Both the position numbers and the translations under genes were made by a program. A stretch of DNA of 64,000 nt from the NCBI GenBank assembly GCA_964035545.1, contig OZ037771.1:445628-509627 (forward strand), given 5' to 3'. Positions 1 through 63,428 of this stretch are shown here, piece by piece. The notes under the pieces were generated by a model. That model did not search any database, was not told the origin of the DNA, and saw only the letters and a list, made by a program, of their open reading frames with translations. This DNA comes from Bugula neritina. Its lineage: Eukaryota > Animalia > Bryozoa. Numbering within the stretch: position 1 is the stretch's first letter; every line of letters begins with the position of its first letter.

Positions 1-3000
1 ATGTCCGTGGGTCTCTTTGCTAAGTGGGGCAGCGGCAAGTCTTTCCTGCTCAACAAACTTAAGGGTGGGTTACAGTTATTAGTACTTATATATGATATAA
101 TAATACTTTAGAATGTAATATGAAAGTATATATTAGTTCTATCTGTTTCTATAACTATTTCTGCAGTGGATATGAAGGTGTTATATTTGTGCAGTGGATA
201 TGAAGGTGTTATATTTGTGCAGTGGATATGAAGGTGTTATATTTCTGCAGTGGATATAAAGGTGTTATATCTGTGCAGTGGATATGAAGGTGTTATATTT
301 CTGCAGTGGATATAAAGGTGTTATATTTCTGCAGTGGATATGAAGGCGTATATGAAACACTCTCCCCAGGTCTACTTCCAGTTCTCTTGGCTCGTGTTTA
401 TCATCAACTTCACTCTCAGCATGCTGATTGGTCTGCTGCTTGCTGGTGCCATTGGCTGGCTGGTGGGGCTGAGTGTTGGCAGCGGTCTGTTTCTTCTACT
501 CTACGTACTGCAAGGTAAGTGTCTACTCTACGTACTGCAAGGTAAGTGTCTACTCTACGTACTGCAAGGTAAGTGTCTACTCTACGTACTGCAAGGTAAG
601 TGTCTACTCTACGTACTGCAAGGTAAGTGTTTACTTCACGTACTGCAAGGTAAGTGTCTACTCTACGTACTGCAAGGTAAGTGTTTACTTCACGTACTGC
701 AAGGTAAGTGTCTACTCTACGTACTGCAAGGTAAGTGTCTACTCTACGTACTGCAAGGTCAGTGTGTATAACTGTATATGAATGTTGTAGGAGTTCTCTA
801 CTGTCTCAACACTAAGAAGAACTGGGAGTGGGTGAATCACATCTCACACTCCGTAGCCAAGAAACTTCAGAAGCTAAGGCTATTGATGTACCTGTTCTTT
901 TATAACAGGCAGCCGGCAGCTCTGAGTGATGACGCTGACTACTCTTCCATCAGGTGTGTACATTACCTGTACCTGTAGAGTTAGTAGTTGCATTACCTGT
1001 ACCTGTAGAGTTAGTAGTTACATTACCTGTACCTGTAGAGTTAGTAGTTACATTACCTGTACCTGTAGAGTTAGTAGTTACATTACCTGAACCTGTAGAG
1101 TTAGTAGTTACATTACCTGTACCTGTAGACTTAGTAGTTGCATTACCTGTACCTGTAGAGTTAGTAGTTACATTACCTGTACCTGTAGAGTTAGTAGTTG
1201 CATTACCTGTACCTGTAGAGTTAGTAGTTACATTACCTGTACCTGTAGAGTTAGTAGTTACATTACCTGTATCTGTACCTGTAGAGTTAGTAGTTACATT
1301 ACCTGTACCTGTAGAGTTAGTAGTTACATTACCTGTACCTGTAGAGTTAGTAGTTGCATTACTGTAGTCACACATGTGCGCTACAGCTTCATATACAATT
1401 CTGCAGCTTTATATTTGCTGAGAGCACGAAGCTGACCAGCTTGGGAGGAGAGCAGTCTCTCTCGTCTATGATTGGCTCGTTGTTTGACGAATTGGAAAGG
1501 AAGTATGGAACCTGGGTTACCAGATTATACAAAGTATTCAGTTCAGATAACGGTAAGTGACAACTGAAAGGTTAGTTTCATTCAACATAATATGCTCTGT
1601 ATCAACATTTAACTTGCTCTATTCAACGTATAACTTACTATACTCAGTCTATAACTTGCTCTATTCAACGTATAACTTACTCTATTCAACGTATAACTTG
1701 CTCTATTCAACGTATAACTTACTATACTCAGTCTATAACTTGCTCTATTCAACGTAATACTTTATATTGTAGAACAAAAAGGACGGTTCAAAAGTCTATG
1801 CTGTATCCCATATTTTGTTATTGTCATATTTGTTTTGGCGTGCTTTGTGTCTGGGATTGGACTTATTTGGTCTCATCCTAATATAAAGAAAGTAAGTGAA
1901 ATGTTAAATATATTCATTCTGTTTTATATAATTCTGTATTTTGAGAAATATTTTATCTATAAACAGAAGCTAGTGTAGTATATGTACTATCACCTTTTAC
2001 ATTTTTTTCCATGAATTGTTAGTTAAATAAATATGTCTGTATTACGCCGTATCATACACTTTTATAGAACCCGAAAGAAATAAATATCGTGATGGCTGTG
2101 CTAGCTAGTATAGTGGCGTTCTCTCTTCTACTCTCTGTGCGAAATGTCGGGCGGGCCATAGCCGCTTACGCCTACTCTCCTAAAAAGTGTACACTGAATG
2201 CCTCTCAGTCTTTAGATGCCTCAAAAAATGACAAGTTCCTGCATGTGCTCAAGAATGAGGTTAGTAACTGTCTAAGTATTGACACTGTGTGACAATGTGT
2301 GACACTATTTGACACACTGATGTAACATTACGTACTGATACTGTGACACTGTAGTATTGTGACACTGTAGTACTGTGACACTGTAGGGCAGTGTCGCTGT
2401 AGTACTGTGACACTGTAGTACTGTGACACTGTAGTATAGTGACACTGTAGTACTGTGACATTGTAGTACTGTGACACTGTAGTACTGTGACACTGTAGTA
2501 TTGTGACACTGTAGTACTGTGACACTGTAGTGCTGTGACACTGTGTTACTGTGACACTGTAGTATAGTGACAATGTACTAATGTGACACCGTGTGACACT
2601 GTGTGACAGGTGGAGTTCATCTCCTCACTCGTCTCTACGATGGACAGACATGAGAATTGGCAGACAAGAATGGTGCTCATAGTTGACGGACTGGACAGCT
2701 GTGAGCAGGAAAAGGTTCTGCAGGTGTTGGATGCTATTAATCTCATTATACCTGAAGACTCCCCCTTCATTGTCTTGCTCGCCTTGGATCCACACATTAT
2801 AATCAAAGGAATTGAAGCTAACCAAATTCAGGTATATATTAGCTCTGCACACAGCGTCTTGTTATGTTGCTGTGTTACTATACGTGTACATGTTTGTGTG
2901 TTACTGTACGTGTACATGTTTGTGTGTTACTGTACGTGTACATGTTTGTGTGTTACTGTATGTCTACATGTTTGTGTGTTACTGTATGTGTACATGTTTG

Positions 3001-62500: not shown

Positions 62501-63428
62501 CTGCAGATATCACCTGGAGACCTGCAGATATCACTTGGAGACCTGCAGATATCACCAGGAGACCTGCAGATATCACCAGATAAAGCCGTACCTCTGAAAC
62601 TCTGTTTTACGGGAAACACTCTGGTTGATGAGGAGGTCTCCGTTGGAGTTCTTCATGTACAGCCGGTAGTCCAGTGGCTTAGAGTTGAGAACAACAATGA
62701 GGTCTCCAGCACCACACGACTGTAGAATATGACAGATACAATGACCTCTACAGCACCACATGACTGTAGAATATGGCAGATACAATGACCTCTACAGTAC
62801 CACACGACTGTAGAATATGACAGATACAATGACCTCTACAGCACCACACGACTGTAGAACATGGCAGATACAATGACCTCTGCAGGACCCTGAAGTAACT
62901 CACCTTCCAGACGTGGTTGTGCTGATAGACGAACAACTCACAGTGTCCGTTGAACACAGTAGCATTGGAGTCAAAAGGATTGTCGAACCAGTCCAACAGC
63001 CACCCGTAACCTAAGGACCTAGCTGAGAGATAAAACACAGACTACAGCTGAGTTATATATAATACGTCAACACTACACATTAATAGTTACTAGTTATATA
63101 TATAGTTACAAGTTATATATAGTTACTAGTTATATATAGTTACAAGTTATATATAGTTACTAGTTATATATAGTTACTAGTTATATATAGTTACTAGTTA
63201 TATATATAGTTACAAGTTATATATAGTTACAAGTTATATATAGTTACAAGTTATATACTGTAGACTAAGTTACTTACCCAGAGTAGCCTTGTGTCTCCAA
63301 ATACCAACCGATACTTGCACAGTGAGCACAAACACCCCAAGATACACGAAATTCACAAACAGATTCTCAACACTAAAGAGGTAGTTCAGCAGACCAACAA
63401 CTTTCAATATGAAGTGAGGACTCTCCAT
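56502..63428 (-). CDS. Uncharacterised, probably secreted or membrane-anchored protein with internal repeats. Exons approx. 63428-63278, 63022-62906, 62719-62592, 62313-62094, 61955-61849, ~61719-61469, ~61274-61187, 61100-60932, 60568-60383, 56738-56502
   Basis: Coding-like exons bounded by GT/AG; N-terminal hydrophobic stretch ([19 protein letters not shown]); repeated Gx(R/K)(F/Y)...G.K...DPxY motif; Cys/Pro-rich last exon. Some boundaries and the start codon are uncertain. Confidence 0.6.
56832..57046. mobile_element. hAT-type MITE (non-autonomous DNA transposon), about 215 bp
   Basis: Terminal inverted repeats caggggtaggcaac / gttgcccacccctg (13/14 match) resemble hAT CAGGGGT-type TIRs; no clean 8-bp TSD. 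Confidence 0.65.
57356..57837. repeat. ~163-bp tandem repeat, 3 copies
   Basis: aaaatttaatttagcagg recurs at ~57356, 57517 and 57681. Confidence 0.9.
58056..58137 (-). mobile_element. tRNA-derived SINE-like element
   Basis: Minus strand reads tagcttcagcagtagagg (A-box-like) ... gggttcgactc (B-box), followed by a T-run. Confidence 0.5.
58668..58838. repeat. (AT)n microsatellite
   Basis: Direct observation. Confidence 0.97.
59100..60335. repeat. Pentanucleotide satellite (TACTA)n with TGCTA and CACTG variant blocks
   Basis: Direct observation; pure (CACTG)n block at ~60176-60275. Confidence 0.95.
62465..62580 (-). repeat. 21-nt intronic minisatellite (gatatctgcaggtctccaggt) containing two AG|GT per unit
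   Basis: About 5 copies. Confidence 0.85.
62695..62883 (-). repeat. 44-nt minisatellite, 4 copies of acceptor plus exon start (catattctacag|tcgtgtggtgctg...)
   Basis: Minus-strand AG at 62852, 62808, 62764 and 62720; the last in transcript order opens [10 protein letters not shown]. Confidence 0.9.

Follow-up and report, generated by a model that had tools for sequence, protein, structure and literature searches.

Tandem arrays across splice junctions in a block of the Bugula neritina genome are no commoner than random placement predicts

In a stretch of 64,000 nucleotides from the bryozoan Bugula neritina (contig OZ037771.1; hereafter the window), the boundaries of several introns are themselves tandemly repeated. 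Each of these repeats, taken individually, is far beyond chance, and the pattern is real and striking. As a class, junction arrays are no commoner than random placement of tandem duplications predicts. The preferred explanation, to which a probability of about three in four is assigned, is random, locus-private tandem duplication combined with survival wherever the exon-adjacent splice copy stays in use.

The pathway would begin with a process at the DNA level, most likely slippage or unequal exchange, which in this lineage makes locus-private duplications of approximately 10-50 nt very frequently and subsequently expands them. The duplications would arise mostly toward chromosome ends and in sequence rich in GTA, TAC, AGT, and ACT. 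Since the introns are short, many units would straddle a junction by chance. A junction-spanning array would survive if the spliceosome keeps to the first GT or the last AG, that is, to the copy which leaves the exon intact; near-exclusive use of this exon-adjacent site would be expected from exon definition and from the human and amphioxus precedents. Eventually, unique intron sequence would often be lost, and the array would become part of the needed intron length. Being part of that length, it would be hard to lose again, in the manner of a ratchet.

Junction arrays of the window and their host genes

All eleven arrays that had been named in a sequence-only reading of the window were recovered in place by a TRF run. 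The arrays and their two best-characterized host genes are as follows.

1-9162, plus strand: 3' part of the KIDINS220-like gene, carrying four of the eleven arrays
156-353, plus strand: acceptor array, 28 nt x 7.1, KIDINS220-like intron 65-334
495-765, plus strand: donor array, 27 nt x 10, KIDINS220-like intron 515-790
4587-4730, plus strand: composite donor array, seven donor copies, KIDINS220-like intron 4597-4930
8697-8898, plus strand: acceptor array, 32 nt x 6.3, KIDINS220-like intron 6883-8882, junction set by the reading frame only
23031-36215, plus strand: CBP/p300 gene with 24 coding exons, carrying two of the eleven arrays
28172-28893, plus strand: acceptor array, 31 nt x 23.3, CBP/p300 intron 28151-28879
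33862-34075, plus strand: acceptor array, 46 nt x 4.7, CBP intron 33841-34074
42140-42520, plus strand: donor-start array, 39 nt x 9.8, weakly sulfotransferase-like gene
47157-47209, plus strand: donor array, 19 nt x 2.8, DUF229 gene intron 47164-47342
47924-47965, plus strand: marginal donor-start array, 10 nt x 4.2, found by TRF, with only the exon-terminal AG copied
55077-55137, minus strand: degenerate donor array, 20 nt x 3, predicted intron 55054-55140 of an ab initio gene model
62694-62889, minus strand: acceptor array, 44 nt x 4.5, predicted intron 62720-62903 of an ab initio gene model

The earlier claim that the repeat unit is a copy of the adjacent splice junction stands for nine of the eleven arrays, the units of which contain at least four exon bases together with the splice dinucleotide. 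It falls for the arrays at 42140 and 47924, which exist but start at the donor, no more than 2-3 exon bases being copied; each 39-nt unit of the array at 42140-42520 contains several donor-like motifs. Seven exon bases are copied in the unit at 47157-47209, and in the 33862 array the first 5 nt of the exon are missing from the copies.

The remaining hosts are the DUF229 gene, the weakly sulfotransferase-like gene, whose match (E 0.0085) does not reach the cut-off, and a pair of minus-strand genes, which are modelled ab initio only and for neither of which a Pfam match was found. Comparison with KIDINS220 homologues places one acceptor of that gene at 1407 and not at 1368, so that the array at 959-1366 is internal.

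Further donor- or acceptor-like arrays were seen at 4175-4256, 49994-50072, 62467-62577, and 46510-46787; the first two count as junction arrays under the rule used here, while the last is located inside a putative 5' UTR intron of the DUF229 gene. A P2X receptor is encoded by an intronless reading frame of 435 amino acids (12247-13554, minus strand) amid this intron-rich region. Its product is 96% identical to a cluster of proteins, and its best named matches come from Bugula and Watersipora, in line with a bryozoan and not a sponge origin. A donor array of 16 nt x 9.6 (14196-14348, minus strand), which was not among the eleven, follows what may be a 5' UTR exon of 23 nt belonging to the P2X gene. 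Other repeats of the window comprise a 165-nt unit present three times at 57356-57836, a 1.2-kb compound pentanucleotide tract at 59114-60346, a TG tract of 400 nt at 39479-39882, and in-frame coding repeats of 24 nt within exons at 55266-55372 (minus strand) and 23730-23786.

Frequency of junction arrays under random placement

The surroundings were covered by a contiguous block of 264 kb, consisting of the window and 100 kb on each side (0.35-0.61 Mb on a contig of 15.8 Mb; the assembly has 216 Mb in 321 contigs). The distance between the window and the nearer contig end is about 0.45 Mb; a motif search for the telomere motif found none. Tandem repeat makes up 32% of the block, and an array is present in 135 of 205 confident introns and in about 60% of introns overall. 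The eleven arrays had been presented without this background, in which most introns carry an array of some kind and approximately one in eight has a junction array. Introns without arrays have a median length of about 140 nt. The block contains 186 intronic and 13 exonic arrays, a depletion which shows that duplications wholly inside exons have largely been purged.

The units are private to their loci, with 10 sharing pairs among 197 units, and fall within the minisatellite size range (13-62 nt). Internal units have a compositional bias toward GTA, TAC, AGT, and ACT, which is strand-symmetric (r 0.75-0.93). Palindromes in the units show no excess over dinucleotide shuffles.

In order to compare the observed placement with a random one, arrays were collapsed, genes were predicted by a small model trained on hand-built genes, and arrays were classed as internal or junction-spanning. 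The gene finder was home-made and recovered 38 of 48 exons exactly on its own training genes. In the strict set, 29 of 159 arrays span a junction versus 30-45 expected (observed/expected 0.64-0.97 under five nulls), and in the relaxed set 34 of 190 (18%) versus 34-52 (0.65-1.01, likewise under five nulls); these ratios refer to 264 kb of one distal block, and the null expectation depends on ancestral intron length. The probability of at least the observed number never fell below 0.5 in either set, and no length class of the block had an excess of junction arrays. In the window alone, 11 of 49 intronic arrays span junctions. Donors are affected in 21 junction arrays and acceptors in 13, which is not a significant difference (p 0.23).

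A rough check on the whole genome is provided by counts of 9-mer patterns, which overlap within arrays and were made without annotation. Tandem tripling affects a non-splice 9-mer to much the same extent as donor 9-mers, the tripled/single counts being 870/4965 for the former and 325/2735 and 1039/5421 for the latter. Reversed-motif controls (1/864, 8/4188, and 117/2093) are tripled roughly 100 times less than the donor motifs, and composition accounts for about 14-fold of this. Among the listed C1 donor matches with R at -3, 16 of 19 loci are located below 2.2 Mb or above 30 Mb.

Duplication targeted to splice junctions, which the sequence-only reading had raised together with a test of array overlap against random intronic placement, is therefore not supported: the overlap is at or below the random rate in the 264 kb, and the 9-mer check likewise gives no excess. 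The null model named there, random local tandem duplication filtered by selection, fits the junction share of arrays. Junction arrays at a nearly random rate would mean that selection against them is weak.

A different route to the same share would be preferential seeding at exon edges, for example through transcription-linked breaks or through repair that begins in a conserved exon and slips once the intron sequence differs, followed by selection that trims the junction share to the random level. Such seeding would account for an edge excess in long introns (in collapsed introns of at least 400 nt, internal arrays are no more than 40 nt away from an exon edge in 10 of 22 cases versus 3.1 expected; p ~0.0004, post hoc), for an array density 2.3 times higher in introns than between genes, and for two independent arrays at one CBP intron end in two lineages. 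The first two of these observations, together with the low tripling of the reversed-motif controls, weigh against the preferred explanation. Preferential seeding is nevertheless judged unlikely, as there is no junction excess overall and microhomology at array ends has a flat distribution devoid of any signature. Furthermore, edge sequence is array-prone in its composition, arrayed junctions score higher (p 0.003), and the long introns may be short ones which were lengthened later in their middle.

Splice site giving the normal protein and state of the decoys

That the site giving the normal protein is the exon-proximal one had been proposed as a consistent geometry, and this is supported by homologous proteins and by orthologous bryozoan genes. 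In the array at 156-353, the last AG (334) gives the normal protein, with one split codon across the junction in 20 of 20 homologues; all six decoys lead to a premature stop. Use of the first GT in the array at 495-765 matches five of seven homologues, again with one split codon across the array, and all nine donor decoys are in frame and stop-free. The donor at 4597 agrees with most of 42 KIDINS220 homologue comparisons, and in another bryozoan (L048) this GT likewise marks the end of the orthologous exon. At other bryozoan CBP loci, exons start at the AG that the last copy of the 23-fold array provides; the 22 decoys of this array keep their AG, every third being in frame and stop-free. From this agreement among homologues, the first GT and the last AG are the ancestral sites, and the introns are old. 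The same geometry must also be expected of any surviving duplication across a junction.

Decoys are less well preserved in the array at 8697-8898, where three of five keep their AG and decoy use leads to stops, and in the array at 55077-55137, where one of three keeps its GT. Over the 264 kb, GT is retained in 163 of 179 donor decoys and AG in 113 of 143 acceptor decoys, and 142 of the donor and 76 of the acceptor decoys reach the score of the site that gives the normal protein. According to frame reading, the use of most decoys is predicted to result in a premature stop. A search for transcript-derived proteins of B. neritina spanning these junctions yielded none. The branch-point motif yUnAy is found at 2 of 13 acceptor arrays; it does not peak at any position and is not more frequent than in shuffled sequence, and its scarcity there is thus uninterpretable.

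Two ways of living with such decoys had been suggested. Tolerance of many intact decoys is supported indirectly, and it is already known from human donor VNTRs and amphioxus mirages. For exploitation through recursive splicing or NMD tuning no support was obtained, given units of 13-57 nt, shorter than the shortest confident array-free intron (71 nt), and no enrichment of in-frame units at junctions (8 of 34 junction arrays versus 54 of 156 others).

Appreciable use of decoys, resulting in copy-number-dependent isoforms or NMD-coupled tuning, is quite improbable. The decoys do score like the used site, and those of the KIDINS220 donor as well as every third one of the CBP acceptor are in frame; moreover, the human genes IFI6 and CBS draw on two additional donors (PMC1557585). 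On the other hand, the missing in-frame enrichment argues against it, F7, LMNB2, PDGF, and the amphioxus mirages splice normally, and copy number differs freely between lineages.

A role of arrays with a YAG/GT junction as ladders for recursive splicing, or their rescue through re-splicing, is very improbable. This junction type occurs in 14 of 34 junction arrays versus 6.9 expected (Fisher p 0.003; 0.009 after composition), but the observation is post hoc, and across the genome the tripled/single ratio is 0.19 for donors with R at -3 versus 0.12 for those with C at -3. As the local excess is not replicated genome-wide, recursion is unsupported, and a ladder would have to work with units shorter than a minimal intron.

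History of the array introns and comparison with known systems

A comparison was made with another B. neritina lineage, which is represented by two independent assemblies from short reads. Its exons are 96.8% identical to those of the window (3.2% apart) and its array-free introns 90.4%. Most of the same introns hold arrays in both lineages, while some arrays are found in a single lineage or have different units in their place. The same 31-nt CBP acceptor array is present in the second lineage with about 8-9 copies versus 23 here, short-read assemblies being known to collapse repeats; its used site is AG/G and its decoys are AG/A. At the intron end occupied by the 33862 array, the second lineage carries a different array of 30 nt. 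The unique part of two CBP introns is approximately 20 nt shorter in the window than in the second lineage, a change whose direction is not polarised. CBP intron 2 of the second lineage (L030) contains a 13-nt array ending at the acceptor, which is absent from the window. All sequencing runs but one contain only 9-14% of sampled words, DNA and RNA alike, which suggests that the assembled colony represents a lineage diverged from most public samples.

The occurrence of the CBP acceptor array in the second lineage argues against an assembly artefact, an explanation that is scarcely credible. Exact copy numbers are indeed taken from the assembly only, but arrays in most of the same introns recur in both second-lineage assemblies, and the array copies carry patterned variants.

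A comparison with orthologous introns had also been called for, and it proved informative: those CBP and KIDINS220 introns that were compared are found at the same positions in other bryozoans, where they are free of arrays. The arrays have consequently invaded old introns. Tandem repeat makes up mostly 0-3% (in one case 9-10%) of the CBP and KIDINS220 loci of other bryozoans versus 15-22% in B. neritina contigs from comparable short reads, which points to a lineage-biased array load. In the KIDINS220 gene of another bryozoan (L046-L048), the donor orthologous to window position 4178 is present as a two-copy duplication, one copy lacking the exon-terminal G in two of three contigs; the same species has an extra intron within the exon orthologous to 2610-2831.

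Expansion was probably accompanied by shrinkage. When the collapsed length is taken as the intron length left once the array is removed, 27 of 135 array introns (~20%) fall below 71 nt, the shortest confident array-free intron, versus 0 of 70 array-free introns. The collapsed lengths are 33 nt for KIDINS220 intron 515-790, 47 nt for CBP intron 28151-28879, and 52 nt for intron 62720-62903. Deletions have probably followed array expansion, leaving the array necessary for intron length. In a TBCK-like gene upstream (L008:2841-3533, minus strand), an intron of 693 nt is built from a 31-nt donor-junction unit repeated 23 times and collapses to 11 nt; three more junction arrays are found in this gene. 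A de novo intron was considered for this array and excluded, since the combination of first GT and last AG is the only one that leaves the frame open. The signature of intron gain, i.e., an intron absent from orthologues and composed of a whole number of units, was not encountered, and unique ends remain in every case.

A bolder reading, which is put forward tentatively and is more doubtful than not, would have intron bodies rebuilt from exon-edge sequence, with edge-seeded duplications expanding, the original intron being deleted, and the array becoming required for length. If true, the branch and acceptor context of the TBCK-like intron would derive largely from copied exon sequence, and hundreds of natural, copy-number-variable tests of acceptor choice among identical neighbours would be available.

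Random duplication with survival of the exon-adjacent copy calls for no new splicing system on present evidence, and the value of the arrays is as experimental material. Up to 22 equal-scoring AGs upstream of the needed one set simple first-AG scanning against exon definition, for which the human precedent covers donors only. Introns that are almost all repeat imply that intron bodies turn over fast while their positions stay fixed. In practice, gene finding in this genome, and the mapping of splices from short reads, will be led astray by such arrays.

Literature searches for bryozoan intronic minisatellites found nothing; the closest relatives are in chordates. Mirage minisatellites of amphioxus (Adh3 and the globin genes BflGb6 and BflGb9) span donors or acceptors and keep AG or GT; their copy number is variable, splicing reportedly proceeds normally in their presence, and somatic instability has been reported for Adh3 (PMC3087553). 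The arrays described here share with them a unit that spans the exon-intron boundary, the retained AG or GT, and locus-specific units of minisatellite size; they differ in belonging to another phylum and in the proportion of affected introns. The tandem duplication across AGGT proposed in the Rogers model of intron gain, as far as it is presented in PMC3087553, similarly multiplies splice signals, whereas no intron gain was found here.

In humans, donor-spanning VNTRs are described for F7 IVS7, CBS IVS13, IFI6 (6-16), LMNB2, and PDGF (PMC1557585). Their first unit spans the boundary and is followed by identical pseudo-sites, the most upstream donor being authentic and the first or first few donors being used; units measure 37-100 bp in F7, PDGF, and LMNB2, all three of which splice normally (PMC1557585). 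These human cases are rare single loci and, in PMC1557585, donors only, whereas the 264 kb examined here contain 13 acceptor arrays as well, in which as many as 22 equal-scoring decoys precede the needed AG. Summarizing, the arrays of B. neritina appear, from their sequence, to be the same kind of minisatellite as the amphioxus mirages and their human counterparts in F7, CBS, IFI6, and LMNB2, albeit at high density.
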